Source: Paramoeba atlantica | Lineage: Eukaryota > Protista > Discosea | NCBI GenBank assembly: GCA_977017575.1 | Contig: CDRNVI010000065.1 | Coordinates: 370,196 to 434,195 of the forward strand | Length of the DNA stretch: 64,000 bases | Direction: 5' to 3' | In this document: positions 2,338-64,000 of the stretch, one piece after another | How the letters are laid out: the number at the start of each line of letters is the position of its first letter | Position numbering within the stretch: the stretch's first letter is position 1 | The notes under the pieces: model-generated | What the model was told of the DNA's origin: nothing | Database searches by the model: none | Seen by the model: only the letters and a program-made list of their open reading frames with translations | Position numbers and translations under genes: made by a program

Positions 2338-2351
2338 GGAGACATTTCGTT

Positions 2352-2622: not shown

Positions 2623-3015
2623 CTCTCCCCCCCCCTATCCTAGCGTTGCCTGGTTTTGGTGAAAAGCAACGCTAGGAGGGGGCGGGGGAGTAAAAACCCC
2701 CACCAATGGGGAATTTCGAATAATGTACTTGCTCATCGGGCCACGATTTTCAAGTGAATCTTTAGACATGTCGATGACGGTTCTAAGATGGTAATATAGC
2801 CATGGTAATATAGCCATTAGTGAGACTAATGGCTAATGACAGTAATAACATGGGATTGATAAATTGTTGAAATCGATAAAAAAATGTCTTCATGAATATA
2901 GAACTCGGAAAAAAAGAACAAAAAAAAAATCTGCCGCTTCGCGGCTGGATTAGTCATCCTCAAAAGCAACGCTAGGAGGGGGGGGACCGGGGCAACGCTA
3001 GGATAGGGGGGGGAG
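2623..3015. mobile_element. MITE family A (TA-flanked)
   Basis: TIRs CTCTCCCCCCCCCTATCCTAGCGTTGCC / GGCAACGCTAGGATAGGGGGGGGAG with TA on both sides (2621-22, 3016-17). Internal AGCAACGCTAGGA repeats. A shorter copy lies at 48650-48819. Confidence 0.85.
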
Positions 3016-4312
3016 TAATATTACTTCCCCCCCTACTTATGCGCAACCGTTTGACCCGGCCACTTAAGCGCAATTTTGACGCATCGTTCAGAAGAACAGC
3101 GCCGCAAAGCGGCGCGATCTTTTTTTGTGGTACGAAATTTTGTACCAATTTTCGCCACTATTGAAATGGAGAGTCTGCAGGTAGTCCCTTTGGACGTTCA
3201 AAAATGATCTTCATCGATCTCCATCGATCTCCTCTGATCCACACTGACCTCCACCGATCTGTACGGCGAGTCTTTGCAAACTATACTGTACTGTTCATCA
3301 GAGGAACATCAGAGTACTGTACTATACTGTACTGTTCATCAGAGAATGTATGGTGAAAATGTACTGTGAACAGCGATTTTTTTGAAAATGTTCCTCAGAG
3401 GGTTGAAACCTGTCAGGTTTTGCCGGGTTTTGCCAGGTTTTGCCTGGACACCTATTTTGGGAGGGTTACTTTGGGAGGCGTGCCACGGCTTCAAGAAGGG
3501 GCATTTTGTGAAAACTGAACCAATATTCGCACTTTTCTCATTTCTGGTAAAAAAAAAGTTTATTTGAACTTTTTTCTGCCCCTTTTTTATGATGAATTGT
3601 GTTTGTGTACATTAATTTTATATAAACGGTGTGTTTTTTGAATTCGTTTGTGCTTCTTTATCTTCTCACCTTTTAATGACGCGCACTGGATGCGTTAAGG
3701 TTGTCGTTCAATAATTATCATTAGAAAAATGTCCTCCAGGGGTGAGAATCAATGTCTTAAAAGGATGCGAAAGCACTCTCCAGTGGCGCAGAAAGTGATA
3801 TGTTACAAGAACCATTGAGATAATAGAAGAACCACGAATTATCTGCATGGACTCTGGTCCGAATAGAACGTTCAAGAATCCTCTTCTCCAAACATCGAGA
3901 ATCTTGCTTCAGGAAGTCGCATAAAAATTCTATCTGACACCCGTCACGATTTATCTCTACGCGAAAGTGTTAGCCACCAAAGACAGTGGATTACAACTGA
4001 AGGCGTGCACTATGGAGTGCGCTAACTCCATGGCTAAAAAGCGTCTGAAGCGGGACAGTATTGTTCCAGGTCGGAAGCTGAAAAAGAAGGGTACCGAATA
4101 CAAGCATAAGCAGAGGTATGCACCGGAAGTTTTAAGTGTAGTGGGGGTGATGCATTGTTTCAAGTTTTAGTAAATTTGAAGCAAGGCCGTGCATGAGTTC
4201 ATTTGTAAGAAGTAAGCATGTACAAGTTGAGAAAAGTTTAAAGTACGGGAAAAAAGGGATTTTTTTTGAAAATTTGTAAAATTGCGAATATTGGTTCAGT
4301 TTAACCGGCAGA

Positions 4313-4570
4313 GTGCACCGCGATCGCAGTAAAAATCTTAAGGAGAAGGTGCAAGAAACTTGTAGCCGCACGGATGAGATTCTTGTAGAGTTCAAGAAGG
4401 TGCAAAGAGAGGTCGGAGAATTGCGGGATGAAGTACTTGCTCTACGGAAAAAAGTGATCTATCTTGAAATTCTGAGTATCAACCAGACGACTGAAAGCAT
4501 GGGTGAAGTCCATGGGGAAGGAATGACGGTGAAGAAGCGAAAGTCTTACGATCCTATGGAATTACAATAA
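4313..4570 (+). CDS. Short coiled-coil ORF inside the Harbinger-like element (possible accessory ORF remnant)
   Basis: 85 aa with a heptad-like stretch FKKVQREVGELRDEVLALRKKVIYLE. Harbingers normally carry a second ORF, but no Myb/SANT motif is recognisable here. Confidence 0.25.
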   Translation: MHRDRSKNLKEKVQETCSRTDEILVEFKKVQREVGELRDEVLALRKKVIYLEILSINQTTESMGEVHGEGMTVKKRKSYDPMELQ

Positions 4571-4747
4571 ATTTGAACGCATAGTACAGTAAAGAAAGCG
4601 GGAAATGAAGAACGTAACGTAAGCTCATACTTTTGTCTCAATGTATTTCTACGTTTCCTACTATATTTCTATCATCCTATGTTTGTGTACTCTATTTTTC
4701 TATTTCTTCCTATAATTTATGGCATTTATTAGCTTTATATCTTCACG

Positions 4748-5104
4748 ATGTCACAGATTTGCCTTCTTCCTTGGTCTAACGTTGCACATGGATTTACTGG
4801 ATATTCCCCGGAAGTTATTTCGCAACTTGTGTCTCGGCTTAATTGCACTAATGTTCAAGTTTTTAATGCACTTACGATGCTGCATTTGAATCTAACGCAC
4901 GAGCAAACAGCTGACGTTCTCATACCATATTTGGGTAAACATTATTCCTCTACGCACGTGTGGAAAAAGTTTATTCGGCCTGCGTTGAATGCATCTGACA
5001 TTGCAGGCAACCTTGCTGAAACAGAGCGACGCTTTTTGGTCCGTGAACCACACTTTGTTCTCTGCACATCAATACTTGACGGAGTTCCCATGTACAGTAG
5101 GTAG
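4748..5104 (+). pseudogene. Truncated Harbinger/ISL2EU-type (DDE_Tnp_4-like) transposase, N-terminal part
   Basis: LTMLHLNLTHEQTAD resembles the family HTH (LxxLRLNLxxxDLA). FVLCTSILDGVP resembles the first catalytic Asp motif (CxxxIDG/C). The ORF stops immediately after this motif. Confidence 0.55.
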
Positions 5105-5440
5105 TTTTCTTTGACCCGACTACTTATGCGCAATTTTAGGCCAAAACCTGGTTGCGCTTAACTGGGGGGGGATAGTAGGAAAGGGCAAGAAAATAAAGGA
5201 AGTGCAAAAAACGTCAACAAAGACCGAGAGGTAACTTTTCTTCTTTGAATCCACAGTCATCCATTTCTAAGAAGTACGTCTTCATTTGCAAGGAGGGGGA
5301 GATTCTAATTTCTAGTGGTTTCTAATCGTCTATAGCAAGGGTCTATAAAATCGGTCCTGCAATTTTGATCTAGAGCATCTTGTGTTGTAAGGATGGACCC
5401 GTGGGCGCTAGATGCCCGTATACACCAGCGTGGTCATTAC

Positions 5441-6535
5441 TCAGTCTGAGATCCACAGATCTGCGAAAGTGATCTCCTTTTCAAAAGGGTCGGGCTTGAC
5501 TTCTCTTCTTTCTGATTTTGAGCAGGATTCTGTTGCCTCTGCATTACACATGATACCTTTTTGTAAAACTGTAACTGTATTGACGTCAGCATGCTCCAAA
5601 ATTGCCGCAGTGTCTTCGCAATCACTTGCCATTTCCTCCTGTACACTTTCACTGCATTGCTTTGCTGTATCATTCGCTTTTTCAGAAGCCAAAATCGGAC
5701 AGTACTTATTCAGGATATTCTCAATTTGATCCTGATATGCATTCTCAGACGATGGATTATCCTTTACATCCTGTAGACGAAGGTAAAGCAAATCCATTAG
5801 CCATTTTGGCTCAGATAGCTGCGAAATGTTGTACAAACGGATTTCGGTTAACCGCTTTAAATATGGAACCAAATCATCGCTGCTTCTCCCTAATTCACCC
5901 GCGCAGATCTCTAGTTCAGATTCTGGAAAATCTAGTTCTTCTACATCAGGTACTCGCACGGTGTGGTGTTCGGATTTTGAGGAATCAGCATCGGGCTCCG
6001 GCACGTTTTTTGTGGTCTTTTTGTCAATTTTGTCTTCTTTGTTGATTTTCGTGGAAGAACCAAAAAGAAATGAGATATTTCGAGATAGTAAGTCCCGAAG
6101 TTGGCCTGTGTGGCCCGTCACAGTGCTTCGAAGCATTCTCAGTCGGTAAGATAATGACTGTAACTGTTCAGGATTGATCCACAAATGAGTGTGATGTCCA
6201 TATTTTATTGAAGCACTCACCAGATAGTCGGCTGTAAAACGCATGTACGGTGTCAAGGTGAAAAAGTTGTGTGGAACAGGAAATATGTCTGCTCTGCATA
6301 ATGAAATGTTCGACACGTGAGTTGACAGAGAATTGCATTTATCTTGACCGTTAGCACTCGTTCCGGTAAAGTACCTTTTAGACGTGTTGAACCAGCGAGG
6401 AATCACAGGAGATCTGGATCGTGATGTATGATACAAAAAAGAAAATGATGGCTCATGCATGATGAGAACACATGGCGAATAAATTCTGCCCTGAATCATG
6501 AGAAGGAAAATAAGTAAGTAACAAGAGTTGTGCAC
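5441..6535 (-). CDS. Hypothetical protein
   Basis: 364-aa ORF on the cluster strand. No confident domain. The true start is probably a downstream ATG (the track start is GTG). Confidence 0.65.
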   Translation of the reverse strand: MHNSCYLLIFLLMIQGRIYSPCVLIMHEPSFSFLYHTSRSRSPVIPRWFNTSKRYFTGTSANGQDKCNSLSTHVSNISLCRADIFPVPHNFFTLTPYMRFTADYLVSASIKYGHHTHLWINPEQLQSLSYRLRMLRSTVTGHTGQLRDLLSRNISFLFGSSTKINKEDKIDKKTTKNVPEPDADSSKSEHHTVRVPDVEELDFPESELEICAGELGRSSDDLVPYLKRLTEIRLYNISQLSEPKWLMDLLYLRLQDVKDNPSSENAYQDQIENILNKYCPILASEKANDTAKQCSESVQEEMASDCEDTAAILEHADVNTVTVLQKGIMCNAEATESCSKSERREVKPDPFEKEITFADLWISD

Positions 6536-6714
6536 TAAACAGATGTGTCATTTACTACTAGATCATTTATTTTTCATTCTGAAATATTTAGGTGGTGAGT
6601 GCTTTATCACAAATTCTTATAATAAAAAAACATCACTTATAATACAAAATGCACAGGAAACGCTCACCCTCTCTTGACACCATAAGGTTTTCAAGATACA
6701 GGCGCCGCAGTTGC

Positions 6715-9700
6715 TTATTTTCGGGCTTTCTTTTTACGTTCCTTTGATGAGCTCCTTTTTGTCTTGTAGATTTTTTTCGGGGTCCGATCGTCATCATTCA
6801 CTAGAGCCTCCTCAGAAGGAGTTTTGGTCGTTCCCAAGTTCCTCGTTCCACCTGAAACGCATGACATGCGATTTTCGTGTGGACAAATAAGTAAGTTGGC
6901 TGTCGCAGTGTTCCGCGCCGCAGATAATAGCGAAGAAAATCGATAGAGATGGGTCGATAAACGCTGAAGTAACTTTTGAGACGGAGCTGTCGTCAAGGGA
7001 ATGCTGTCCGCCTTCACTACGAAAGAGGTATCTTCCTGTAGAATTTCATCCCATTCACAATGTTCACATGATCTTTCTGTATTGGTATTTCTAGTCCACC
7101 TAAAACGAGCACTCTCGTCAAATGGAGTGGGATCCAACACTTCTGATTCCCACTCCGTATGTAAAAATAGTCGAGCACTGATGTGAAGAGTTGTATTTCG
7201 ACGGGCAAGCTTCACACGTTTCGAAAACCAGCAACTGGAAAGTCGAGTCACATCGGCCCCATGATCGACAATCTTCCCGATTTCAGCTGTTCCCGAGAAC
7301 CAGTCCTCCTTGGAAAGGTCCCCGGGTGAATCATACCTCTTTTCATCCCCTTTTACCTGCGACGACCACCCAGGCGGCAGTTCTACGCTCTCCCTCAAGG
7401 ACTGCACAAACGTTTTAAATCTTGTCTCCTCGAGCTCCTCCTCCTCTCCTCCCAAATCATCCGAAGAACTCTCCCCGCGCGGCAGTCCCACAGAGGATAC
7501 CCTTCTCTCCAGAATGCTGCTCTCCGACTTCCCCCTCTTTCTTGCGTAATCCCCACAATCTTCCCTCCACCTTTGATAGGCCAACGTGACGTGCCCGCAG
7601 CTGCTTCTCGCGAGGTCCAAATAAAGCCCCGTGCCTACCCCTTGGGGGGAAGACATTTTCATGGCGAAATGAAAATGCGTACTGAACTGGAGAATAGCCT
7701 CTTTGTTTTCCTCACATGTTTTCGGGACGTTGCTGAGGACCATTTGATCATCGAAATAATGAGGAGAAGGCATGGCTGAGGAAGACGTTGTTGTTATTCT
7801 TGTTGTTGTTGCGCTTTCCGGCAGCTCCTCTTGTGAATCATTAAATGAAGAGACGAGCGAACTTCTATACCGGTGAATGGGTGTTCCATGAGAACTTAGG
7901 GAGTCCTCATAATCTGTGATGGTCTCAAGAAGCTGTGGAAAAAGCCGTGCGAGGGTTACAAAGGTGTAGGGGCATTCGTGTTCTATCCAACGTGCGAGCT
8001 CCATAGGCAGGAGCTCGGCAATCTCCTTAAGACGTAGCGGGGTGAGCTGGTCGGATAGACACCATGAAATTTGTGCTACTCGGGTGGGAAGGCTGTGAAA
8101 CGACCTGTAACGTTCGGAACATGCCATCAGAGGGTTGTTATGGAGGGAACGCCGGATATAAACTACCTCGGTGACCTCATTTGTGGTGGGGTGAATAAGC
8201 GGGCAGCAGCGAAGTTCAAAATAACGATAAGGGGCGTAACAGTTTAGAAGGCTCGCAATGTTTCTCTCTTTGATGAGCTCAAGGGCTGCCGGGGGTAATC
8301 GAGTTAAAGTCAACGTCAGAGGAACCCAGTAGGACGGCGCCGCCAGTGCCATGGCATCGGTAAATTTTAGCTCAAGCATTAACAAAGAATTTTTGTTCCT
8401 GAATTCCGAAACAGGGAAACGTTCGCGTGTAATCCCCCAATCTTTGCGACCAATATACCTGTCATTGCAATGGTGCAAAACCATGTGGGATCTCTTCAAG
8501 ATCGGGTGTTCATCAACAATATTGTTTAAATGAATCGATGCAGATTCCTGTTGTTTTCCTGTTTGACACACTTGTATGAGACATTCGAGATCCCTGCACG
8601 AAAACCATCCTACGATAGGGACAAAAGAGTCCAAGATGCTGAACAGTTGGTCATCGCTGTAAGGGTGCAGTCGCACAGACCCCTTCTCTGCATTATAGTC
8701 AAAAACGAAGGAGTGCGCGGCAACGAACTTCTCAGCGGATGAGTCCCACGACGAATCAAAATATTTCTCCATTTCTTTCGGCATATTGAGTTCCATGCCA
8801 TTGATCGAATTCCTTGGCTGTTTTAATAGATTTTTCTTGGTCCTTTTCTCTTGCGTTTTACGTTTCTTTCTAGATTGAATTACCGCGTTTTGCAGCCATA
8901 CTGCTAGTTTCAAGCGAGTTGCATTATCTTCTAGGACTTCTGCGATATACTCCGCACTAAGCCGGTCGGGTCGACATAAAAGTTGCCTGACGATTGTTTT
9001 CTGCACTTCACTGCTTCCACGAAGAGCTGTACTGTTTGAGTGTTCAACGCGGTGATATTCATGTTGTGGTGAGGCACTGTTGTATCCAAAATCCTGTAAG
9101 AATGTCTCCAAAATGAGCTCCCGCTCTTGTAGTGTGCCATTAGATGCGGGTTCCCATTCCGGACATGCAAAGCGAATAACGTTACCTTTCTTTCTATTGT
9201 CTGCAGTGGCAGCGTCGGAAAATGGAAACCGATCGTTGGGTGTTGGAGAAAGTGAGAAGCGTTCGTGTATTTTAACAAAATATGGATTGTTCGAGGGTAC
9301 CGCTACATTGACGAAATAATGATGCGTCCCACACGGCTCATTTTCTGCAGAAAAGGGGTTTGTAGCATCCTCGAAAGCTTCTTCACCTTCCTCGTATAGA
9401 GCACTCGTCCACCGAGAGCTTATCTCACCAGTCATAGTGCGATACCGGATGGAAATCGGTTCTTGTAATACAATAGAACATAAACCTTCGCGCACGTTTC
9501 GAGAAGTCTCGTTCGATTCCCTTACGAGATTCAGTATATCATGAAAAAGAGTTCGCAGTTCTTCCGCGCTCAACATGGCGTGCACTCGGCTTCTATACTG
9601 AGGACCGCTATACCATATCCCCTTCTTAGGCACTTCCTTCAAATTTTGATCAGGATCGGAACCAACAGTTTTTTTTTTGATCGGACTCTCATCCTCACCC

Positions 9701-17218: not shown

Positions 17219-17442
17219 TAGCTATAGTCGCAATAACCTTACTTACAGTATACCTTACACTGTATGAGTTCGACGAACACTCTTCTTCAAGAGTACACTT
17301 ATCTTATCGACTCATTCCTTTGGGCCAAAGAACGAAATGGTTTTCGTAGCCTGACAGACGACATGTAAACCATGCTTTGGGTTAATGTGCCCATGGCTAC
17401 GGGTTAATGTGTCCTGTAGTTATTGTGCCGGGGGCATGATAA

Positions 17443-17979
17443 GAGGGTTGAAACCCACGAAAGGCAAAACCTGGCAAAACCCGCATATTCCTCATTGACA
17501 TGGCGAAGAAAAGTACTTTGTCAAAAGTAGTGAAGAACGTACTTGGTCTCCATCGTGCGCTGCAAAGCATTTTCGCGCCACAAAAAATGAAAATTTTGAA
17601 AAAGATATTTTTTGAAATAAACCCTCAGAAACGGTAGCCGAGTTCTTGGCGAACACTTTCCACCCCCGTACTCGGGGACGACTCCCCCTGGTATCAACAG
17701 GACGGGGCCGCCAAGTTTGGTTTCTTCTGAAAAGAAAATTGAAAAACACGCCAACTTGGCGAAAAACATAGCTTAAAAAATAGTTATTCAAAATCGTTTC
17801 ACCTATAGTAGTTTGAGAGTTTGGGACCTATACTAGCTTTCTACGCCGTTGTTTTCACAAGATACCCCTTCTTGAAGCCGTGACACGTCTCCCAAAATGA
17901 CGCCCAAAAAAATAGGTGTCCTGGCAAAACCAGGCAAAACTTGGCGAAACCTGGCAAAATTTAACAGGTTTCAACCCTC
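17443..17979. mobile_element. Tourist/Harbinger-type MITE with 3-bp TAA target-site duplication
   Basis: Perfect TIRs GAGGGTTGAAACC / GGTTTCAACCCTC, TAA at 17440-42 and 17980-82, and CCTGGCAAAA-type subterminal repeats at both ends. Confidence 0.8.
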
Positions 17980-18688
17980 TAAGTGGGAACGATTATTAGT
18001 ATTGTGCCCCCCATAAAATTGAGCGCCTCAAAGCTATTTTCATCACTGCTTCAGATAAGGCAGGCTATTAGCTAGACAAGGGACGCTATTGGCGTAGTTG
18101 AAGCGCCAATTAAATTAATATTTGCATCACATTAGCTTAGATTTTACTTTTTCGAGGTATTGTGGTCCGCGATAGGAAAAGAAACGCCGCAAATCGGTGC
18201 GAGTTTTTATGCATTTACTTATGATGGAAATCAGTATTTCCGTGACATCAGCGAGGCTCTTCGTTTTACCCAACACCCGTTTTCATAATCAAAATTATTG
18301 TATCCATCTTCTGCCCTCCTGTATTTCATCGTTGGTCATGAGTCAAGTACGCTAAGGTGTAGACAACGTATTACAACTTCACTTCGGGAGACTGACGCAT
18401 GGGAGAAATCTTGCTCTGGGGTTGTCGCTGGTGCATATTCCCCGGCACGGCTGTCTTCCCGGTAATCACTCCGAGCGGTATACTGTATCACCATGGGAGT
18501 GCGACTCTGGTGATACGGTGTACCTACACGTACACACACACTCGATTCTCCTGTTCTACAAATCATATTTAAAAGATTTCTACAGTTGACGAGTAGAAAC
18601 AATCCCGCGAGCTGCGCGGGATTGGTCAGTTCTCCGAACTTCATGATTATCTTCAAAACTGAAACTCATGTCTGGTCGAACGGTGATT

Positions 18689-19486: not shown

Positions 19487-19566
19487 TGTATATTGTATAT
19501 GTCTGTGTGTGAGGGAGAGAGAGAGCGAGAGAATTTTCTACTTGCTATTCCTACCACATTAAAGAA

Positions 19567-19720
19567 ACAGTTTCTGTACCATAAAGAGTTTCTGGATCAT
19601 AAAAATACAGTTTCTGTACCTTGTTGGTACATTTTTCCTAGTTCATCCTTTCTTTTCCCGGAAACGGGCATACTCTTAAACTTTTATGTTCGTTTCCGGT
19701 TGGCGCTAGGGCCGGAAACT
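19567..19720 (+). ncRNA. Spliced-leader (SL) RNA-like gene, copy 1
   Basis: The kinetoplastid/diplonemid SL core ACAGTTTCTGTAC occurs at 19567 and 19607. The second core continues CTTGTTG|GTAC (donor GT at 19627). Downstream are a hairpin CCCG-GAAA-CGGG (19657-68), a U-rich single strand AACTTTTATG and a hairpin at 19692-19719. The exon 5' end is not canonical. Confidence 0.65.
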
Positions 19721-20520: not shown

Positions 20521-20673
20521 CATTCTCCTCCAGCGAGGGCAAATCCTCATGTGATCCACCCGTCGTGTGCGGGTAAGGACACTGTCTCTGCACTATAAGT
20601 GCATGATTAAACAACAATCAAGGACGCTTCGGAACTCAAAATCAATTTGAAACGCTTCGGATAACATGCATTA

Positions 20674-20958
20674 CCGTATACCCCCCCCAGTAAGGTACCC
20701 CCCAATAAGAGAAATTTGGCTTGGGAGCCCCACAGGGGGCGTATAGGGGGTAGGGGGTGGGTGTCTGCATGTTGGGGGCCTCGGGGGTAACCCAAAGAAG
20801 CGTTTTAACACGTTTTCAGAAGAAAAAATAGAAAAAACAGTCAAAAAAGTTGGGAGAAAAGGGGAAACTGGCCAAAAAAGCATACCCCCCCGGTAAGAGA
20901 GATTTGGCCATTTCGACCCTAAACTTTACTGATTCTCTTACTGAGGGGGGGTATACGG
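20674..20958. mobile_element. MITE family E (TA-flanked)
   Basis: TIRs CCGTATACCCCCCCCAGTAAG / CTTACTGAGGGGGGGTATACGG with TA at 20672-73 and 20959-60. Confidence 0.8.
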
Positions 20959-26643: not shown

Positions 26644-26682
26644 TACTGTACCCTAGTTACTGTACCCTAGTTACTGTACCCC
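26644..26682 (+). repeat. 14-bp tandem repeat TACTGTACCCTAGT x2.5 abutting a TIR
   Basis: Units start at 26644, 26658 and 26672; the last merges into the TIR at 26674. Confidence 0.85.
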
Positions 26683-26983
26683 TCCCGTTTATAATAGCCT
26701 CGCTTTTGCCCAAGTGAACCTACATATAAAGGGGGGGGGGGCGATACTTACTTATAAAGGGGGGGGGGCGATTAAAAGTTGGCACAGAAATCGCCCTACA
26801 TTTGGGAGCGAGGAACCAATAATTATCCAATCGCTAAGTGGGCCCCGGCACTCTGCCAAAGTAAAATGACCAACACGGCCCCGCGCGATACCTCGAAGAA
26901 CCATGTGAAAATAAATATCAAAATATTTAAGACGGCGCAAGAAAAATAAAAAAATTGCTCGGTTTGCCCAAAAAATGAACCCA

Positions 26984-29061
26984 CAGGGGGGTGCACGAAA
27001 ATATGGGGGGGGGGTCAAAATTCTTATAGCTCGGCCAATCTTGGAAAATAATAGCGCATTCGAGAGCTCTCGCAGAGTTACGTGTCATGTGATATCACGT
27101 TTTACGTAGTTTCCAGGTATATGCATTCTACTGAATACCGTAAATAGGGCAACTGCAAGTTTTTTTTCTGGTAAAAAAAAAGTTAGTATCCACAATTTCC
27201 ACCTTTTTTCTCCAACACAATTTTCACACGCGTTGGAACACTCTTTAAAGTTCTCAAAAATACATCGTATTGCTCCCCCTTTAATTTTTCGACCCCAGAA
27301 GCGATCGCTCGTCTCAAATCTTCACGATTCGTTGGACAAAGCGCGTTTTTATGCTCGTCCATTATTCCCCAAATGTTTTCTATTGGGTTTAAATCTAGGG
27401 ATTTGGGTGGCCAACACAACATCTTCACTCCTTCATCATTAAAGGCACGAAGAGTGCTATTGTGAATTGTACAATTATCCATAGCAACGACTGCCCCCCG
27501 ATGTCTTCGTAAAAAAGATAAGAAACCGTTACGTTGTAGCATAGTTTTTTTGAAAAGGTCTCCATTCACTGAAATTTTATTACCCTGTTGATCTTTATTA
27601 GGGAATTCATGAAAAAAGAAACCGTGCTTAATGCTGACCCCCATCCACACCATAATACCATCACCCCCCAACCACCTTTCCCGCTCACCGGCGTGCTCCT
27701 TTGGGGGGTCTGAACGACGGCAAAGGTAGGTAATTTTGCGTCTGCCCCCGCAAGTAAATTTTTTCTCGTCTGTCCAGACGATAGCCTCAAGCTGAGCAGG
27801 GGTCCATGTTGCCAACTCCTGGCATAGCTCTACTCGTTTCCTTTTGTGCTCCTTTGTGAGTGCAGGGTTTCGGGGGACTGTGCGGGATATGATACCCTCC
27901 TTCTTGAGGGAACGTATCAGAGCGCGACGGGAGCTGAAACCCTCTCCTACAAGAAGGTTCAGAAGGTGACCCCAAGAAGCGATACCATAGGTTTCATTCC
28001 TTGTTGCTTGATCAATAAGATTGAGTGCTCGCTTCAACAGAGGGCCAGATATTACAGGAGATTGGCGAGTTTTATAGGGAGACCTATCGACCTCACCAGT
28101 CGCTTCGTAACGCTGCACCCAACGCTTGATAGTGTCCTCGTGACACCTAAACGCCTTGGCGACAGCTGAAAAAGAATTAGTTTCCTCAAATTTTTAACCA
28201 AAAGTATCCTATGAGATGCTTTAAGTTGCCCACGAGGCGAATAGCAAAATCTACTCCGTTTCTGAACCTTTTTTTATTCGGTTATGATCATACGCTCGTG
28301 GCGCAGAGATACGTCTCTCTGTGTGACGGCCGATACCATCAGCGCATGACCCGCATACGACGGGTGTCACACAGAGAGTGGAGTGCGAGGTAGGAGACGA
28401 GTCGCCCATCGGTCATGCTACAGCACGTATAGCCATGGTTCATGCTGCAACACGGTCAAGCCGTGGGTTCATGCTGTCAGATGGTCTATCGTGGATCATG
28501 ATGCATCATGGGGAGGTCCGTTACCGCCGCACTCGCTACAGCATGTAGGAAGAGAGGGGTGCAAGTTCGCATCCCCTATACACGCATACAACGTGCCCTC
28601 CCGCTGTAGCACGCCCAGTGGTCCTCAAGGGAGGCCACCATGGCGCATAGCTCCCGGGAGAAGAAAGCACGAGAAGTAGAGAGCCGGGGAGGGAAGAAAG
28701 CTCACTCGAAGAGAGCGAGCCGGGGAGGGGTGAAGAGTGCGAAGTGCGTCCCCTACTATATATATGACCTACTATATATGACCCCTACTATACATGTATA
28801 TGACCTTTTCTGGGGCATGGTAGTGTATTAGGATCAAAAAAGTCGGTAAATTCACAAAAAAAAGTATTTTATTCAAAAAACTGCAGAATTTTTTGAAAAA
28901 TCATGATTTTTTTAATTTTTTTTAAAAAATTAAAAAATGCGGGAAACGCATTATCACATGACACGTAACTCTGCGAGAGCTCTCGAATGCGCTATTATTT
29001 TCCAAAATTGGCCAAGTTATAAGAATTTTGACCCCCCCCCATATTTTCGTGCACCCCCCTG
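26984..29061 (-). mobile_element. Tc1/mariner-superfamily (Tc1-like) transposon, 2078 bp
   Basis: ~110-bp near-perfect TIRs (26984-27094 / 28952-29061) starting CAGGGGGGTGCACGAAA. Flanks are TA on the right and CA on the left (probably a mutated TSD). Confidence 0.9.
27183..28118 (-). pseudogene. Tc1-like DDE transposase (DD32E), probably 5'-frameshifted
   Basis: Motifs WTDEKKF, VMVWMG-like, MDNCTIH and WPPKSLDLNPIENIWG. The frame extends upstream through an HTH (SFSAVAKAFRCHEDTIKRWVQRY) to a TAA near 28195 with no ATG. Confidence 0.85.
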
Positions 29062-29967
29062 TATAAAGGGGGGGACGGGTCTTGGCTATTATAAACAGGG
29101 GGGGTACAGTAATAATACTGTACCCTAATTATCTGTCACACGTCACCCCCACTAGTTATCTGTCACTTTTTGGGGCTTCGATTTTTTTTGTCGACTATCC
29201 CCCCTAGTTATCAGTCACCTTCTTAAAATAGGTAAATTACTACAATTTTTTTCTAAAAAAATCTTAAAACGAAATTTACATCTTTTTTTTGTGTTTCAAG
29301 CGAATGATCGTGCGTGGTACCCTCCCCATTTTTGATTTTTCAAGTTTGGACCACACGAAATTGCCTCAATTTTTTAGGATTGTTTCGAATGCAGTAGGAC
29401 AAATGCGTATGCAATGCATATGTGTTTGAACATGTACGAATACTTGAGCGGCACCCTGGTTCCGTATTCCAGCATTCTTGACACACGTTTAACAGCGTGT
29501 TGCCGGGGAGATCACTCGGGTACGCAAGCGGGCCCCTTAAGTGGGAAGCATTCTGGGCGGGGAAAAGACTCCGGATTTTTTTTCTCGGCGATCACAGTGC
29601 CAGGCAAGCTAATGTGTGTATACCACGCCCGAGATAATGGGGAGTTGCTATGTCCCCGGGCAGAAGGCTGTCCAGGGATTAGCAACACCCTCATAAAAAT
29701 TTTACCCCATGGGCTTCACTTCACGAAACTGCTGTATGCTCAATTTTGTACATATTGATCGGGGGGGGGTGAATATTAAAGGAGGGTCACTGCATGTCAA
29801 TTTATTATGTCGTAAAGAACTTCAACCCAAGTGTGATCATTCAAGAAGCCGTTATTTTACTTCAATTTAGGCGATCACAAGGATAACTGTTTAGATCAAG
29901 ACAAATATGGACCAACTTTTCAGGCACATTTCAGAGGAAAGTGGGGTGAACTATGATGTACGCTGCA

Positions 29968-30383: not shown

Positions 30384-30670
30384 CTACCCCCCCTATTTAA
30401 TAGGGCTATGCGCGACGTCCCCTCCCTTTAATAGGACCTTCTAGTCTAGAAAGCCAAAAAGTATTTCCGGGAAGTAGAGAAAAATTTGTCGAATCACCAC
30501 TTTAATAGCTACCCCAACATCAAAAAATGCATCAAAAGACTTTGTTTAGCAACGACAAAAAAGGGGCCGCGAAGCGGCGCCGAATTTTTATTCACATCTT
30601 TTTCTATGTACCCCCCCTTTAACAGGACATTTTGTCCAAAATCGGAGCCCCGTTAAATAGGGGGGGATAG
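30384..30670. mobile_element. MITE family C, second copy
   Basis: Left end CTACCCCCCCTATTTAATAGGGCTATGCG matches the inverted right end of 16914-17218. Right end GTTAAATAGGGGGGGATAG followed by TA. Confidence 0.7.
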
Positions 30671-30672
30671 TA

Positions 30673-47317: not shown

Positions 47318-48976
47318 AAGCAACTTTCAGTGTGTGTAAAAATAAACGTTTGTGATGCAATTGACCGGTTAGTGTCAACGTCTTCAAATTTTAGACGTTT
47401 AGAAACTTTAGGCGTTTAGAAAAAGAGATAAAGCTTTTGTTTTCCTCCGTCTCTGATTAATTATCCTACCAGAACATCAGTGGCTGGCATAAACTTCGCC
47501 AAGAAAAAGGTGACCAAGGCTTAATAGCCATGACAGGAACTAATGCCAGACCATCGCTTAAAAAGCACTTCGAAAAATTTATCAAAGAAAGTATTTCTGA
47601 ATGTCACTTTTTTGGAATTCCAGTCAGCAAGGCGTATCTGTGGAGAATAGCTTGTGAATCCCTACTTACTCCCGATGACTCTCCCCGTTTAGCGCCCGTG
47701 ATTGAAGTGCTTAAAAAGGTTCAAGGCGAAAGACAAGAAATGCGGACGCCGTCTTAACCCACATTTGTTAGATGGTTGAGACAATTTAATGTAATTATGA
47801 AATCTATCAAACGGACACATAAACCTTCACTTCCTTTGGATCGGGAGGATCAGGGTCGCAACATGCTCCTGCGAATCGTTTATCATGTTTCATATGCCCA
47901 ACATGGAACTTTAAACGAAGATCTTGTTATTAATATAGACGAGACAGGAATTGCGTATAATAAGCTGGCCGAGCGGGGAGCTTCCTACAAAGGGAATAAG
48001 GCCGGTAATATTTCCCTAGCTGACAAACGAAGCTGCACATTGCTTGCTGGCTTATCTCTCTCAAGAAAACTTCTTTCTCCCTTCGTTGTTTGGAACGGGA
48101 AAGAGACATGCAAACATGCCAAAGTCAGGCATTACTATGAAACGGTGCAATATCAGACGGAAAATCATTATATTTCCACCGGAGCACTCTTAAACTATGT
48201 ATCAAGTATTTTAAAACCCTACTATGATGGTCAAACGCAGCATATTCTACAAGATGACCGCAAGCCTGCGATGGTTCTCCTTCTGGATTGCTGTTCGGTT
48301 CATGTATCCAAAGCCACGAGGAATAGATTTATCGATCACTGCCGTCCGGGAAAATTGTTTTCATGGCTGTGCGTGGTTTATGTCCCCGCCAAATGCACTT
48401 CTCGTCTTCAGCCATGCGACGTCGGTTTGTTTAACCGTCTAAAATCAAAAGCATTGCACTTCAGAACAATTTGTTTGCTAAAATACTGTCAAGATTTGTA
48501 TGCTCGGTCACAAAGAATCGGTGATACCAGCTCTACTGGGACAAAAATTAGCAAAAGCCAACTTCTCGACAGCACTCAAAGCGGCTACGATAATCTCAAT
48601 AGTTCTCAACAAAAACATGCCAACATACAATCTTGGACAAAGGTTGGTACTATCCCCCCCCCCTATCCTAGCGTTGCCTGGTTTTGGGAAAAAGCAACGC
48701 TAGGAGGGGGGGTCAAAAAAAAAATCGCCGCTTCGCGGCAAGAGAGTCTTGAAGAGACAGTCTAAGAAGCAACGCTAGGATAGGGGGGGTACTGAGGCAA
48801 CGCTAGGATAGGGGGAGAGTATCTCACGAGAAACTTTGACAAAGCCTGAGCATATATTGGAAGCTACAAGACGCTCTATCGAGTTCTCCGGTGAAAACAC
48901 TGCTGTAGATTCTGACGAAGAAATGGATCTTGAAGAAATTTCTCCAGAAAGTGCAGATCAACCTTTTGTACCTTAG
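47318..48976 (+). pseudogene. Decayed pogo-like (DDE_1/CENP-B-type) transposase
   Basis: Aligns with 49726-51783 from KQLSVCVKINVCD onward. Lesions: a 17-bp tandem duplication (47390-47423) causing a frameshift, in-frame TAA at 47458 and 47755, and a MITE at 48650-48819. Catalytic IDET / LDCCSVH / LQPCD are retained. A TIR-like TA|CACCCCCTCTCATTAATTTTAATAAAT lies at 46722-46748. Confidence 0.85.
48650..48819. mobile_element. MITE family A, 170-bp internally deleted copy, inserted into the pogo ORF
   Basis: Same TIRs as 2623-3015, with TA at 48648-49 and 48820-21. Confidence 0.9.
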
Positions 48977-49174
48977 CCCTCCCTTTATTATGGTTCAGGT
49001 TCATTATACTGTATGGGCGCTTAAGCAAATATTTGTCATGATCACCTCATAATTATTATCCTCGTTTACCCACAATCTATCCTTACAGCGAAAAAAATTG
49101 GTTCATCCTATCAGCTAAAGTGTTGTATATCACGTCCTTCCACCTACCCTCTCTCATTAATTTTTATAAATATA

Positions 49175-49290
49175 CTGTACCCCCCCTACTTAATTGTCAC
49201 CGCTTTTTGGGAAAAAGGACAATTAAATAGGGGGGGTGCAAATTTTTAAGAAAGTAGGGGAAAAAAAAATTGCGCCGCTTCGCGGCGCAT
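49175..49290. mobile_element. Left end of a family-D-like MITE (no right end found)
   Basis: TA|CTGTACCCCCCCTACTTAATTGTCACC...GACAATTAAATAGGGGGGG aligns with 30673-30735 and includes the GCCGCTTCGCGGC hairpin. Confidence 0.6.
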
Positions 49291-49725
49291 GTTTTACTCT
49301 ATTCTACCACCTGCTATTATTTTTCTTATGTAAGCGTATGTCCAACGGAGACACTAAAAAATTCACGATGGGCACCACTAGAGGATTTTATAGAGGCCCT
49401 ACCCGAGGGGCAGGAGGCCGTATTCTCACCCAACGCCCTAGAGGACCAGTAACCCGTTGTTCATTTGAGGTAGTTGACAGTAAACGTACTGTCAACGAAG
49501 TGGCATCGTTTGGGTTGACTCGTCAACAAGTTTTTGAGGCATTATCTTCTAAAAAGCAATTTTTAAGAATACTTTCTTTGACGTTCTGTTGTGCCGTATT
49601 ACTGTAAGTTGCATTAATAATTATAAATTTGCACAAATCCTAAATTTATAATTATTAAGGGTTTATAATTCTTTCAGAGTGTTTTTATAATTATAAATTG
49701 GTTTTAAGCTTTTTGTTTTACTCGC

Positions 49726-51783
49726 ATGTCACGACCGAAGGGGAAAAGGGGACAAGATCAGAACGTAGGCAGCATTGAACAATTTACTAGCGTATCCGGC
49801 CGACCCCCTCCTCGATGGATGGAGAAAAAGCGGCGTTTTCTTACATCCTGCTTAGAAAATGGAGGGGAAAATTCTTTTTTTAAGGAACTTTTTGTAAATA
49901 TGTTCCAATCATTTGCGAGTGAGCATGAATCTCTTTTTCTCAGTTACGTCGAAACTTTATTGCTTGAAGAGCGTACCAAGTTCATTATTGAGGAGCGCAA
50001 GGAGCGTGAAATGATAGCATGTAAATTTCATGGAGGTTTATTTAGTCTTAACGGCGACGGCATACCAATATTCTGGGACGATAATTCTACGTCGCTTCAA
50101 TTTTCGTTTTCTTTTTGTTGGACGGCGCGAAGCGTTGATGCGCCGCGTTCAATGAGTGATGAAAGTAGTGATGCTCCTCTCGCTGAAGACGATGATTCTG
50201 AACATGTGGAAATGTCACATTGCGTAAAGAAGCAATTCGTCTCCAACGTGAAGATTTGTCTGTGTGATTCCATGGATTATTTCATGCATCAATCAGACTA
50301 CTTCGTACGTCTCCCAAAGAGGGGAGGACGGTTTCCTCATTACACTAACCTATGCAAAAAACTGAAATCTGTATATCCGAGCATTGCTGAACAAATCGAA
50401 TATCAAATTCTTCGTCTTTGGTGGCAAAAACGCGAGAAGCTCGGAGACGAGTCCTTAATTCCTAAGAATACATCTAACCAACGACCAAGCATGTTGTCAT
50501 TCTATGAACCCCTCATTCGCAGGCTATTGAATGAGCTAATATTTTACGGAATTCCTGTAGGTAAGAACCTGCTCTGGGCAATTACACGTGAAGCAATCAT
50601 GCACGATTCTGACGACATTGATTATCTAACGAAACATCTCGTAGACAAAGTTAGATCTGGTGCCAAGGTAAAAGATGAAGAAACGTTTATACCATCCTAT
50701 CATACCTTCATCCGGTGGCTGTCGAAAATGGATATTTCAATGAAATCGACAAGAAATACACCCGAAGGCGCTCTACCAACAAATTTAAACGACCTTGCGC
50801 GAGATATGCTACTGCGTATATGTTATTATGTAGGCATAGAATGGAACGACAAGGTTATTTCCCCTCTTCTAATTAACATGGACGAAACTGCCGTCGCCTA
50901 TAATTCTCTTGCGGAGCGTGGCTTAACATATCAGGGGCAAGAAGCGCATAGCATTGCAGTAGGAGACAAACGAAGCGCAACTCTTGTAACTGCTGCATCT
51001 TTAAGCGGTGATTTGGTTCCACCATTCGTGATCTGGAATGGAAAAGAAGCCTATAAGGGTGCGCACGTGAAGACGTATGACACGACGGTTCAGTACCAAA
51101 CTGAAAGTCACTACATTAGCACAGGGGCATTCAAAGAATTTTTGTCACGCATTCTTCAGCCATATCATGAAAATATTGTTGGAAAACTGGATTTATCGAC
51201 TCACACGCCTATGATTCTGCTTATTGATTGTTGCAGTGTTCATACATCAAGCGCTACCAAAGAACAGATTATTTCCCAATGTAATTCGAACGGAGCATTT
51301 CCGTGGCTCCGAATTGTATTTGTTCCTGCGCGATGCACGAGTGTGCTTCAACCATGCGATGTGGGGATCTTTAATCGATTGAAACCTAAAATACGGTACG
51401 AACGAACGTTGGTTCTTCTGTCGTATTGTAAGTATAAGAGACAAAATTCTGAATTGATTGGAAGCGCGAAGGAGCTGAGTTCTCGTTTAAGTAAGGAACA
51501 ACTTCTCCGTTCGATTCATAAAGCATATGAATACATGAGCTCCCCAGAGCAGCGCAAAGCAAATGAGAAAGCATGGGAAAAAGTAGGTATCACTAGTTGC
51601 ACGTTGGAGGATCGTCGCAACTTGGTTGAAGCATGGGGAAATCGAAGACGCTTATTTCCCTTGAGCGACGACTACCACCCATTAAGTAGTGACGAAAATA
51701 CGGATTCCGAGGATGATTTCGAGGATATTCCCATTGAACTTGATGACCAACAATGGCTTGGTGTTGACACAAATGTCAATTAA
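49726..51783 (+). CDS. Pogo-like transposase, intact (685 aa, DD43D)
   Basis: CENP-B/Tc5-like HTH (GIPVGKNLLW...PSYHTFIRWL), INMDET, LIDCCSVH and VPARCTSVLQPCDVGIFNRLK. 43 residues counted between the 2nd and 3rd Asp. Acidic C-terminal tail. Confidence 0.92.
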   Translation: MSRPKGKRGQDQNVGSIEQFTSVSGRPPPRWMEKKRRFLTSCLENGGENSFFKELFVNMFQSFASEHESLFLSYVETLLLEERTKFIIEERKEREMIACKFHGGLFSLNGDGIPIFWDDNSTSLQFSFSFCWTARSVDAPRSMSDESSDAPLAEDDDSEHVEMSHCVKKQFVSNVKICLCDSMDYFMHQSDYFVRLPKRGGRFPHYTNLCKKLKSVYPSIAEQIEYQILRLWWQKREKLGDESLIPKNTSNQRPSMLSFYEPLIRRLLNELIFYGIPVGKNLLWAITREAIMHDSDDIDYLTKHLVDKVRSGAKVKDEETFIPSYHTFIRWLSKMDISMKSTRNTPEGALPTNLNDLARDMLLRICYYVGIEWNDKVISPLLINMDETAVAYNSLAERGLTYQGQEAHSIAVGDKRSATLVTAASLSGDLVPPFVIWNGKEAYKGAHVKTYDTTVQYQTESHYISTGAFKEFLSRILQPYHENIVGKLDLSTHTPMILLIDCCSVHTSSATKEQIISQCNSNGAFPWLRIVFVPARCTSVLQPCDVGIFNRLKPKIRYERTLVLLSYCKYKRQNSELIGSAKELSSRLSKEQLLRSIHKAYEYMSSPEQRKANEKAWEKVGITSCTLEDRRNLVEAWGNRRRLFPLSDDYHPLSSDENTDSEDDFEDIPIELDDQQWLGVDTNVN

Positions 51784-51900
51784 TTTTTTTTATTTCTGTC
51801 CGTTGGACAGAACTCAAAATCGGGAAGCTAGGTCGGGACCTCCTTGTTGTCTTACCTGGTACTACCGCCTCACTGATGGCACTAACGCGGACATGTAGTA

Positions 51901-52085
51901 ACCCTCCCCCTCGCTTATATATACACTTACGGTTATATATACACTTACGGTTATATATACACTTACACTTATATATACACATAAACACTTATATATACAC
52001 ATATTAGCTACTTTCGCTTATATATACACTTACACTTATAACTTTTACATACAGATAATTATGTGTATATAACCAGGGGGGGTTA
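51901..52085. repeat. MITE-like insert with TTATATATACAC(TTAC) tandem repeats in the pogo 3' region
   Basis: About six TTATATATACAC units, weak terminal inversion (CCCTCCCCCTCGCTTATATATACAC / GTGTATATAACCAGGGGGGTTAG), and flanking ACATGTAGTA direct repeats. Confidence 0.55.
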
Positions 52086-52340
52086 GTACATGTAGTAGTA
52101 CATGTAGTATCATTCGTAAAAAAGCAAGAGGCCCAGTTGCATAATTATTTATAATTATAATTATAATTATAAATACAAAAGTTTTATTTTTTATATTTAT
52201 AATTATTAATGCAACTCCCAGTACAGCGTCGAAATGTCTAATATCGAAATAGGAAAGTCTAATAATCAAAGCCTGTCAAGTGAGAAACGATTACCTCTTA
52301 GTAGACGTAGATTACCTCTAGTAGACGTAGAGTGTATGCT

Positions 52341-53180: not shown

Positions 53181-53547
53181 TTGTTTTGTAAAAAGAGTTT
53201 AAAAATGCAAAACCAAGAACCCCTATAAAGAGCTATTTCTCTTCTGAAGAAGTATTTAAAGAGAGCAAAACAGAATAAAGCTTACGCTTCTTGAAGAATT
53301 CTTTATGACGCGAATGGTATAAACCTCTGCCCTCCAAAAGTCACACGAGTTTATCCATCACATTGCTTCCTTACCTCATTTTTTGGTGAAAGTGAATCAT
53401 TATTGCGCCAAAAAAATATTTTTCTCCAATTTTCAAATATTCGTTTGAAACAAGTATGTTTTCTTTTAGAGTGTGTCAGATTATTAAAAATACAAACTTT
53501 TTTCGGTTTATCACAATGAACTGCGCACAATAACACAATTAATTAAG

Positions 53548-53757
53548 TTGTCTGCTGGAAGCCGAACCGTAACGCGCGCTGATGGCTGGCGAGCGAGTCG
53601 CTCGCTGGGAAAAGACTTGCGGCATGAGACAGTTAATCGTCGACGATCTTTGGTGCACACCAACACGGTTGAACGCATGAGTGAGATACTCAAGAAGGCA
53701 GTACGATCCCGTAGGAATGGGACCGTTGGGTGCTTTGATGAAGAAAGAAAAGATTGA
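53548..53757 (+). pseudogene. Merlin/IS1595-type transposase remnant (C-terminal catalytic part)
   Basis: TRADGWRASRSL ~ (S/T)D-x-W-x-AY-x2-L, and HETVN...VHTNTVE..LK ~ H-x-TVNH...HTN-x-IE-x-W-x2-LK. Confidence 0.65.
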
Positions 53758-53995
53758 CCAAAGTTCAGCGGAGACGTCGTCAATGGTCTGAAGATCGGAA
53801 ACAGCGAGGGAGATCTTTTAAAACAGCTGTGCGAAGATCTCTAATTAATGTGAAGACTCATCTTTTTAGAAGCGAAATCAAAAGAAATAAGTAGTAGCGG
53901 CCCATAAACGTAAAAAGATATCTGCATTTATTTTTTTCAAAAAAGGCGCAATAATGCCTCACTTTGACCCATTTTTTACCCCTTTGTCGTTCTCC

Positions 53996-56409: not shown

Positions 56410-56423
56410 TTGCTAACCCTAAA

Positions 56424-62026: not shown

Positions 62027-62224
62027 TCGGCGCTAATGGGACAATCGATGGATGATCAACCTTTCTAAGAAAAAAAATTGTTGCTAATAAATGAAATTAG
62101 TTGCATCTCCCGGTAAAGAGCTATTGAAGAAAATGATTTTTCTTTTTTTATCGTTCCGTTAAGCGCGGTAGTCGTCGAAAATTCGTCGAAAATTAAAGAG
62201 GAACACAGCAAACCGGGACCCGGG

Positions 62225-62500
62225 ATAACATACCTGTAACACGACAACATACCGGGGGGGTATGCTATCGTGAACAGCAGTGGATAACATACCCCCCCCC
62301 TCTGGATTTTGGAGTTTGGGGGTCAATTTTTTTTTTGAGATTTTTTTTTACATGTGTAGTACTGATCATTTTTTTTGTTTTCTTATCAACATGAGCATTC
62401 AAGTACAGAGTTGCACAAAAGTTAACATACCTGTAACAGCATAACATACCTGTAACATGTACCTGTAACACGATAACATATCGGGGGGGGTATGTTATCC
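62225..62500. repeat. Repeat cluster: ATAACATACCTGTAACA direct repeats and an 18-bp inverted pair
   Basis: Direct copies at 62225, ~62422 and 62441. GGATAACATACCCCCCCC (62282) pairs with GGGGGGGGTATGTTATCC (62483-62500). No clear TSD. Confidence 0.7.
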
Positions 62501-63143
62501 TGTAACACCGTTTAGTAATCTAATATTGCAGTGGTTGTATAACTACCTCTCTACCCTTGTTGAAAAAAGTGAACAAAAAAAATGAAAATATAAAGAGGAA
62601 CAACATAAAGAAAGATTTAGAAGAGAAGTATATAAAAGGGGGCTCCGGTGGTTCAAAATTGAAAGGAAAAATCGAAAAGAATTGACGGTCTAGGGGGGGG
62701 GGCAAGGGGGGCTCTAAGGGGGTCTATGGGGGGTATATGGGGGGTGGGTTGTCAATGTCAGTCCACCAAATTGAGGGAGTTGCTATGCGCTGTCCGTGGT
62801 ATCATGTTCAGGGGAACAGCAACTCCCCAATATCTTCGCGTTGAAAACTACCACCGCGTTTAACGATGAACCAAAAAAATAAAAATTCCCTTCGAAAGCA
62901 GAAGAAACCGGAAGGATTTGAGTAAAAGGTAGCCGATTTTCAGGTAAAAATGGGGTCATTTTTGCGTATTTTTGCTCAGTGCGCTAAATCCGACATTTGC
63001 TTGTGGGAAATCACTCGTAGGCATGCATTCAAGGCTACAGAACGTATTGAGTAGAGAATACGACTCCAACCACACCATTTTTCCGACACAAAACGACCCT
63101 TAGGGTCCGAAAATTACTTTTTCCGCATATTTAGGTCAATAAA

Positions 63144-63238
63144 GGGTTATTTTGGAAGGCGTACCACAGCTCCAAGAAGGCGTATCTTGTGAAACTGACG
63201 GCGTAGAAAGGTAGTATAGGTCCCAAACTCTCAAAATA
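63144..63238 (+). repeat. Dispersed copy of the Harbinger-family subterminal sequence
   Basis: Aligns with 3463-3515 and with the reverse complement of ~17810-17900. A weaker copy lies at ~24938-24993. Confidence 0.7.
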
Positions 63239-63417
63239 CAATACGCAAAACGATTTTGAAAAACTATTTTTGGGTAATATGCAGTCAAACTGTACCCTAA
63301 ATTTCATTTTTTTTTTACTTTTTTTTGTCAAAAAAATATGTGTGATTAATTATTTACTTGATAGTTTTGAGTCATTTTCACCCACTTTTAAGCTTTGTTT
63401 ACGTCTTAAACCATTGA

Positions 63418-64000
63418 ATGGACTGCTCAGGGTGTAGAACTTTTGCGTGCTTGACGCTAGTTACGTCAATTTTGCAAATAACGTCAGAGAATGTTGTTTC
63501 CTGGCTAGTAAATCACTCTTTCGGGGCTTATACACAGTGTCTTCGCTGCAAAGAGAAACCGAGAAGCGATCAATGCTTCAAAAAACTCGAAGACGGTTCG
63601 AAGTGCCGCCTAAAAATTCCGAAATTTGGCCCCTTTTTTCCTTTAAACTGTCGAATTGTTGATAAATTTCGATGTTGGCTGCTTCTAGCGCAAGGTAACC
63701 TGCCCTTGAACGCAGCTTTGCAAGCGCTCAGGTCTCTTCGTTCAGTTCTTACAGACCTAAGTGAAATTGAACGCATATTCAGCATTCCCCGTTCCCCGCA
63801 CATGCTCATGAAGTACGTTATAGTGGATGAGACATACATTGGGAAACGCCTGCACCATCGCGGGAGACAAGTCCGCAAACAAAAGTTCTGGTTTATGACG
63901 GCTACAGAGGTTGATCCAAACACCGGGAAATCATTGCAAACATACTGGGAGGCAACGGTTCGCCGAACGAGAGAGGTTTGCCACAGGTTTGTCCGATCAG
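63418..64000 (+). CDS. Merlin/IS1595-type transposase, partial (runs off the window end)
   Basis: Manual translation from ATG 63418 is open to the edge. A Cys cluster (QCLRC...C...C) precedes VIVDETYIGKRLHHRGRQV..KFW, matching the Merlin V-x-IDE-x3-GKRK-x-HRGR motif. Confidence 0.85.
   Translation, partial: MDCSGCRTFACLTLVTSILQITSENVVSWLVNHSFGAYTQCLRCKEKPRSDQCFKKLEDGSKCRLKIPKFGPFFPLNCRIVDKFRCWLLLAQGNLPLNAALQALRSLRSVLTDLSEIERIFSIPRSPHMLMKYVIVDETYIGKRLHHRGRQVRKQKFWFMTATEVDPNTGKSLQTYWEATVRRTREVCHRFVRS

Follow-up and report, generated by a model that had tools for sequence, protein, structure and literature searches.

Can a kinetoplastid gene cluster be home to several superfamilies of cut-and-paste transposon? 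The question is raised by a stretch of 64,000 nucleotides from a Paramoeba atlantica assembly (GenBank GCA_977017575.1, contig CDRNVI010000065.1; "the window" below is this whole stretch), in which transposase genes of the pogo, Tc1 and Merlin types and the remains of a Harbinger element lie within a cluster of genes that points to a kinetoplastid. So far, the mobile elements recorded from kinetoplastids are the trypanosomatid retrotransposons ingi, CRE, VIPER and TATE, which are class I and move by copy-and-paste, whereas those of the window are class II; to our knowledge, kinetoplastids are the textbook eukaryotes without DNA transposons. From the observed anatomy of the elements, their target duplications, their families of copies, an insertion polymorphism and a set of host markers, we conclude that the window is very probably a prokinetoplastid polycistronic gene cluster that has been colonised by four class II superfamilies together with their non-autonomous derivatives, the host being most likely a Perkinsela-like endosymbiont of Paramoeba atlantica. 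The elements themselves are ordinary members of known superfamilies; what makes them interesting is the lineage that hosts them, together with their evident recent activity.

Class II elements of the window

A young, complete pogo element occupies positions 49602..52221 on the plus strand. It is 2,620 bp long, its 27-bp terminal inverted repeats (TIRs; CTG..AGTTGCATTAATAATTATAAAT) agree at 25 of 27 positions, and it is flanked by TA target-site duplications (TSDs) at 49600-49601 and 52222-52223. Its open reading frame (ORF; 49726-51783, 685 amino acids) matches Pfam DDE_1 above cut-off (E 6.6e-9, 36 bits), and the motifs NMDET, LLIDCCSVH and QPCDVG supply a D-D-D triad whose last two aspartates are separated by 43 residues (DD43D). 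No helix-turn-helix or CENP-B domain is recognised by Pfam in residues 1-400 of this transposase, which may reflect divergence. The element is present in contig C65, where the filled site reads TA-element-TA, and is missing from contig C7, which is about 99% identical to the window across 60 kb in reverse orientation and is its allelic or recently duplicated counterpart; there the uninterrupted empty site survives with a single TA. Because the C7 haplotype keeps this target site intact, the insertion is a recent one. The family is small. Besides a copy of 99% identity, C1 carries a partial tandem array (C1:11798-29409) that repeats the first 1.5 kb of the element with a period of 5,093 bp; a further copy, 89% identical, is on C51/C60, and several short deletion derivatives have kept both ends. 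Directly upstream of the young element is an older one (47582..49581, plus strand), whose 31-nucleotide TIRs are decayed and only 77% complementary and whose ORF (47776-48765) keeps the same D/D/D motifs, its N-terminal half being gone. The DDE_1 domain with a D-D-D triad, the TA duplication and the short TIRs are features of the pogo/Tigger/Fot group (Gao et al. 2020, PMC7325037), from which the window pogo differs in its DD43D spacing, in its length of 685 amino acids and in an N-terminal half left unexplained by Pfam.

A complete Tc1 element lies on the minus strand at 26984..29061, its bounds being set by comparison with seven other copies. The canonical element measures about 1,570 bp and has TIRs of about 120 bp that begin CAGGGGGGTGCAC. 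The transposase ORF (27183-28118, minus strand) matches Pfam DDE_3 above cut-off (E 3e-8, 34.1 bits), also gives an HTH_Tnp_Tc3_2 signal, and aligns to the catalytic domain of Sleeping Beauty (5cr4; E 1e-8) with the D-D-E residues in place, within the motifs WTDE, MDNC and PIENIW. At least eight near-full copies are 95-100% identical. TA flanks seven Tc1 copies, and the left flank of the window copy has mutated to CA where the C7 allele has TA. The element resembles Tc1/Sleeping Beauty in its size of about 1.6 kb, its long TIRs, its TA duplication, its DDE_3 domain and its HTH_Tnp_Tc3_2 signal; it departs from them in a D-to-E spacing of 32 residues, not 34, and in having a kinetoplastid host, for which the literature searched reports no Tc1. 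The window copy is further interrupted by an unclassified 510-bp insertion (28288..28797) that is private to it, as neither the C7 allele nor six other Tc1 copies have it, and the Tc1 insertion itself interrupts an outer element like a miniature inverted-repeat transposable element (MITE), at 26671..29112, that has 29-nucleotide inverted ends (TTACTGTACCCC...). The first 180 nucleotides of the Tc1 family also occur in tandem arrays with a period of about 2 kb, at C21:764409-782024 and C19:303419-307652.

The Merlin transposase ORF (63418..64000, plus strand) runs open off the end of contig C65, which is also the right edge of the window (position 64000); what is left of it is the N-terminal 194 amino acids, with no stop codon, including the first catalytic motif, VDETYIG. 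Taken alone, this fragment has no match to Pfam DDE_Tnp_IS1595, as most of that domain would lie beyond the contig end, and it was recognised by tblastn similarity (down to E 2e-15) to four Pfam-verified Merlin ORFs of the same genome (L013-L016). One of these belongs to a complete element on C8 (L015) that has 71-nucleotide TIRs, an 8-bp TSD (GTATAATC) and an ORF of 396 amino acids, and many of the IS1595 matches in the assembly have open frames of 380-450 amino acids. The window also holds a Merlin deletion derivative, a MITE of 585 bp (53385..53969, plus strand) with a 25-nucleotide TIR (GGTGAAAGTGAATCATTATTGCGCC), an 8-bp TSD (CATTTTTT) at 53377-53384 and 53970-53977, and a transposase remnant of 51 amino acids at 53560-53712; it has more than 20 full-length copies of 86-99% identity, some of them on C48 and C90, two contigs that carry HSP90 genes (see below). 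A segment of the Merlin transposase is found in a tandem array of period 1,692 bp at C21:145145-164000.

The Harbinger remnant (3398..5104, plus strand) has a left TIR (GAGGGTTGAAACCTG) in common with a Tourist-like MITE described below, and an ORF (4748-5104) that encodes an N-terminal piece of a transposase; the part with DDE_Tnp_4 has been deleted from the window haplotype. The C7 sequence is longer by 1,264 bp at window position ~5102, and the additional stretch holds the DDE_Tnp_4 domain (allele L052:1216-1683(-), 39.5 bits); a further half of a Harbinger element lies 2.0-2.7 kb before the start of the window, and at other loci of the kinetoplastid-type compartment the domain scores 71.8 bits. 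Inside the window no DDE_Tnp_4 domain was found: Pfam searches of the ORFs at 3382-6535 gave no Harbinger match, and relaxed tblastn with four Harbinger transposases gave nothing in 2300-6800. The MITE (17443..17979, plus strand; 537 bp) has the TIR GAGGGTTGAAACC and TAA TSDs at 17440-17442 and 17980-17982; the assembly contains 756 candidate copies, and the four others that were examined are flanked by TAA or TTA. A fragment of the same family (63146..63271, minus strand) is 86% identical to 17776-17901. The DDE_Tnp_4 domain, the 3-bp TAA/TTA duplication and a high-copy MITE of about 0.5 kb that shares the TIR of a larger element are as in PIF/Harbinger and Tourist. What differs is the host lineage, which is new, and the second ORF: one of 216-243 amino acids is conserved (44-90% identity among three copies), and it has no Pfam match, hence no recognised Myb-like domain, in the copy tested.

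The initial annotation had listed transposases of four types in the window, with TIR and TSD evidence for three of them. Three of the types stand, namely Tc1 (by DDE_3), pogo (by DDE_1) and Merlin (by tblastn), while the Harbinger DDE domain has to be moved out of the window, to C7 and about 2 kb upstream; inverted ends and target duplications are found for Tc1, pogo, the Harbinger MITE and the Merlin derivative. In the mechanism that we propose, the DDE/DDD transposase of an autonomous copy would bind the TIRs, excise the element and reinsert it, and the staggered cut in the target would leave a duplication of TA (Tc1, pogo), TAA/TTA (Harbinger) or 8 bp (Merlin). MITEs and deletion derivatives, which keep only the ends, would be moved in trans by autonomous copies, and at least the pogo family has moved recently, given an element in one haplotype and an intact target in the other.

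The Merlin elements of Bodo saltans and Perkinsela sp. CCAP 1560/4 are few and diverged, lack TIRs and TSDs and are thought inactive (PMC8101967), and the transposases of the window could by analogy be domesticated host genes or dead relics, as has been proposed for the TIR-less Merlin of that Perkinsela. The second pogo and the Harbinger of the window, both clearly decayed, would suit such an account. We nevertheless consider it extremely improbable, since it leaves unexplained the intact TIRs and TSDs for all four kinds, the near-identical copies at unrelated loci, the polymorphic pogo insertion with its clean empty site and the large MITE families.

The host of the gene cluster

Some 18 long host ORFs, the longest of 3,191 amino acids, fill the minus strand of the window with no signs of introns (ORF list); the pattern of co-directional intronless genes reported in the initial annotation is thus borne out, with about 18 genes in place of the 20 counted there. 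The first of them is PELO (1126..2337, minus strand; Pfam eRF1 domains 1-3), and the others include, besides the 3,191-residue ORF, APC10, TYW2/TRM5, a Pex16-like protein, an F-box protein and two small leucine-rich repeat (LRR) proteins (LRR/FNIP), as well as a full-length POLQ with its helicase and polymerase in a single ORF of 1,674 amino acids. Rfam and tRNA scans of the window gave no matches. On the plus strand the transposase genes are the only substantial ORFs that do not overlap host genes; the two pogo ORFs (47776-51783) and the Merlin ORF (63418-64000) are antisense to the cluster and the Tc1 ORF (27183-28118) is sense. That three of the four transposase ORFs in the window are antisense raises the question of how such transposases are transcribed in a polycistronic genome. 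By manual tally, some 12-13 kb of the window, or about one fifth, is derived from transposons.

A spliced-leader-RNA-like locus is present on the plus strand at 19560..19720 (ATACAGTTTCTGTACCTTGTTG followed by GT), with the leader at 19605-19628. The same leader sequence, ending CAGTTTCTGTACCTTGTTG, is joined at an AG acceptor in the mRNA of HSP90, and in the contigs of run X1 a loose end (GATACAGTTTCTGTACCTTGTT) is joined at AG, behind a pyrimidine-rich tract and 50 nucleotides upstream of the HSP90 start codon. The HSP90 transcript shows spliced-leader trans-splicing of the kinetoplastid type, as seen for that gene and not for a gene of the window. Between 19560 and 20200 there are two full leader cores and a degenerate third, with a second downstream unit that has no leader; assembly-wide, the repeat has at least 319 candidate sites of 83-100% identity on dozens of contigs, and it is dispersed and not only tandem. 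HSP90 itself is encoded in tandem arrays, is 99% identical to EukProt EP00008_Paramoeba_atlantica_P001689 and has its best named relatives in Perkinsela (80%) and Trypanosoma (76%); a FastTree analysis places it, with 97% local support, in a clade with Perkinsela and environmental sequences, the Trypanosoma clade standing apart. A profile search of the assembly found the kinetoplastid RNA-editing family MRP (32.8 bits, above cut-off) and no match to the paraflagellar rod (PFR) family, an absence that fits, if weakly, an aflagellate Perkinsela-like cell. The host of the window is right to be called a kinetoplastid, and more closely a prokinetoplastid tied to Paramoeba atlantica, as the leader, the HSP90 grouping, MRP and the co-directional intronless ORFs agree in indicating; the kinetoplastid host of the initial annotation is thereby upheld.

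The assembly also contains a canonical amoebozoan-type actin, at C163:107054-108172 and C151:90319-95362, with Dictyostelium and Acanthamoeba actins as its best solved relatives. We had entertained the view that the assembly is a single organism, only one set of HSP90 being present, and this actin led us to reject it. The two actin contigs and C169 (L009), which carries a Harbinger family of its own, have a GC content of 0.36-0.41, lower than that of the window, and a different tetranucleotide make-up. A tetranucleotide score was trained on the window and C7 against the two actin loci and applied to the fetched loci; the HSP90, MRP and divergent-actin loci score as window-like. So does every fetched Tc1, pogo, Harbinger, Merlin and MITE locus save the Harbinger on C169, which scores with the amoeba-type actin contigs. 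Moreover, the MITE families of the window recur on the HSP90 contigs C48 and C90 and on the MRP contig C53. Because composition and MITE families are common to the window and the HSP90 and MRP contigs, we assign the window, with its transposon families, to the kinetoplastid. We note that on the kinetoplastid-type contigs the best match to the actin family (C48:107154-108383, C90:52430-53659) is very divergent, at 128.9 bits against about 500 for the canonical protein; the symbiont may therefore lack a conventional actin.

Were the window part of the nuclear genome of Paramoeba atlantica, its kinetoplastid look would be misleading and DNA transposons would be unremarkable in it. We regard this as very unlikely. 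The amoebozoan-type actin in the assembly, the LRR/FNIP and F-box proteins encoded in the window, and a PELO whose best match is only 41% identical and bears no kinetoplastid label are in its favour, although PELO is for that very reason uninformative as a host marker; set against them are the long uninterrupted ORFs on one strand, the trans-spliced leader sequence that lies in the window itself, a tetranucleotide composition shared with the HSP90 and MRP loci and unlike that of the actin contigs, the MITE families recurring on the HSP90-array and MRP contigs, and a pogo clade held in common with free-living prokinetoplastids, to which we now turn.

Origin of the transposon families

A word-indexed search with the pogo transposase returned a partial self-match only, and its relatives, 630 in number, came from an exhaustive protein search. 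Among those with a name, transcripts of two free-living prokinetoplastids come closest, those of Apiculatamorpha spiralis at 42% identity (E 3e-85) and those of Papus ankaliazontas at 44-51%; the next, from Volvox and fungi, are near 29% identity. In the resulting tree the two window ORFs group together and form, with Papus, Apiculatamorpha and environmental sequences, a clade of 99% support that leaves the algal and fungal pogo sequences outside; in contrast to other pogo/Tigger/Fot elements, the window pogo thus has only prokinetoplastid transcripts and environmental sequences as its nearest relatives. These relationships, as far as sequence comparison goes, favour inheritance within the prokinetoplastid lineage over capture from the amoeba.

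Acquisition from an amoeba host, which the initial annotation had put forward as a possibility, finds no support: the pogo relationships speak against it, and the Harbinger comparison lends it none. In a broader form the same idea would have the transposons gained horizontally from the amoeba host or some other outside donor. The partners are in intimate long-term contact, Harbinger elements occur in both compartments, and the outside comparison rests on pogo and not on Tc1, Harbinger or Merlin; on the other hand, pogo is 42-51% identical to its counterparts in free-living prokinetoplastids as against about 29% for Volvox and fungi, and blastp shows no similarity between the one Harbinger copy sampled from an amoeba-type contig and the copies of kinetoplastid type. 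There are, in addition, many diverged subfamilies per superfamily in the assembly, which suggests long residence. On balance we judge a horizontal gain unlikely and prefer to think of the four families as long-standing residents of prokinetoplastids that would not be recent imports from the amoeba.

Merlin was the first and is the only DNA transposon reported in kinetoplastids, in Bodo saltans and Perkinsela (Lopes et al. 2021, PMC8101967), and none were found in 57 trypanosomatids (PMC12278014). The paper that describes Papus and Apiculatamorpha leaves transposons unmentioned (PMC7859406), and a literature search found no paper on the genome of Paramoeba atlantica or of its symbiont. As the literature searched reports Merlin only, the families described here appear to be undescribed for kinetoplastids, and the claim made earlier, that Merlin was the reported element and that pogo, Tc1 and Harbinger could be new to the group, agrees with these sources (PMC8101967, PMC12278014). 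The Merlin of this genome resembles the published one (PMC8101967) in its DDE_Tnp_IS1595 superfamily, in its occurrence in non-trypanosomatid kinetoplastids and, most likely, in having an amoeba endosymbiont as host. It differs in that a complete element with TIRs and a TSD and a 585-bp non-autonomous family are present, and in its abundance: the assembly has at least 150 Pfam matches to IS1595, beside at least 117 to DDE_Tnp_4, at least 81 to DDE_1 and, of 676 candidates, at least 150 to DDE_3, counts that mix amoeba and kinetoplastid contigs and take in both haplotypes. As the actin on C163 and C151 reveals a mixed assembly, some of these are amoeba copies.

Several points tell against the reading of the window as a prokinetoplastid cluster colonised by four superfamilies, and are best considered together. 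Harbinger is present there as a TIR-bearing remnant and MITEs only, and the Tc1 ORF begins at GTG and may be N-terminally incomplete. Catalytic activity and the way in which transposases would be expressed within a polycistronic unit are inferred. The placement with Perkinsela comes from one gene and one FastTree run; that the host is most likely a Perkinsela-like endosymbiont of Paramoeba atlantica is argued from the match of HSP90 to a Paramoeba transcript and from the missing PFR family. The assembly, finally, is mixed, with some contigs from the amoeba, and the comparison with outside relatives covered pogo only.

Remaining repeats and the place of class II elements in kinetoplastids

The window contains other repeats as well. 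A MITE-like element at 2625..3013, which is related to 48646-48822, has perfect inverted ends of 23 nucleotides (a run of C, then TATCCTAGCGTTGCC), and inverted-repeat pairs that are candidate MITEs are found at 3512-4302, 20663-20969, 30387-30666, 30562-31056 and 62210-62513. A pair of 59-nucleotide inverted repeats (21193-21251 and 24655-24713) brackets an ORF of 863 amino acids (21786-24377), which we considered as a new transposon and rejected, the ORF being single-copy with two alleles and therefore a host gene flanked by two copies of a repeat. Just beyond this pair, at window position ~24870, C7 carries an insertion of 1,322 bp.

The two haplotypes differ at further sites. An unclassified insertion of 380 bp (29373..29752), absent from C7, has the 9-bp direct repeat CTCAATTTT on its flanks and a core (80-321) that belongs to a dispersed repeat. 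At 33883-34216 the window haplotype has 334 bp that C7 lacks, with no target duplication; C7 may have undergone a deletion here, or the stretch may be an element that inserts without duplicating its target. Opposite window position ~2817, C7 has an insertion of 4.9 kb (L050:580-5316 = C7:56579-61315) that is absent from the window and contains a single intact ORF of 1,578 amino acids with reverse transcriptase (E 9e-28) and zf-RVT domains. This is a polymorphic long interspersed nuclear element (LINE), class I like the trypanosomatid retrotransposons, and it has probably been active recently.

For the kinetoplastids as a whole, we lean somewhat towards a history in which diverse class II elements, mobile to this day, were ancestral to, and retained in, the Prokinetoplastina, and were lost secondarily by the trypanosomatids. 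On the same view they would account for a large part of the P. atlantica endosymbiont's genome, and this genome would therefore be several times the size of the 9.5-Mb one of Perkinsela, which at present serves as the model for the symbiosis, and much less streamlined. If class II elements are present in prokinetoplastids, their loss would fall on the line that leads to trypanosomatids and not at the base of the group, and a Perkinsela-like endosymbiont can be rich in repeats where a streamlined genome might have been expected. The locus also provides a natural case for asking how transposases are expressed under polycistronic transcription and trans-splicing, and native active elements of this sort could serve as genetic tools for kinetoplastids.

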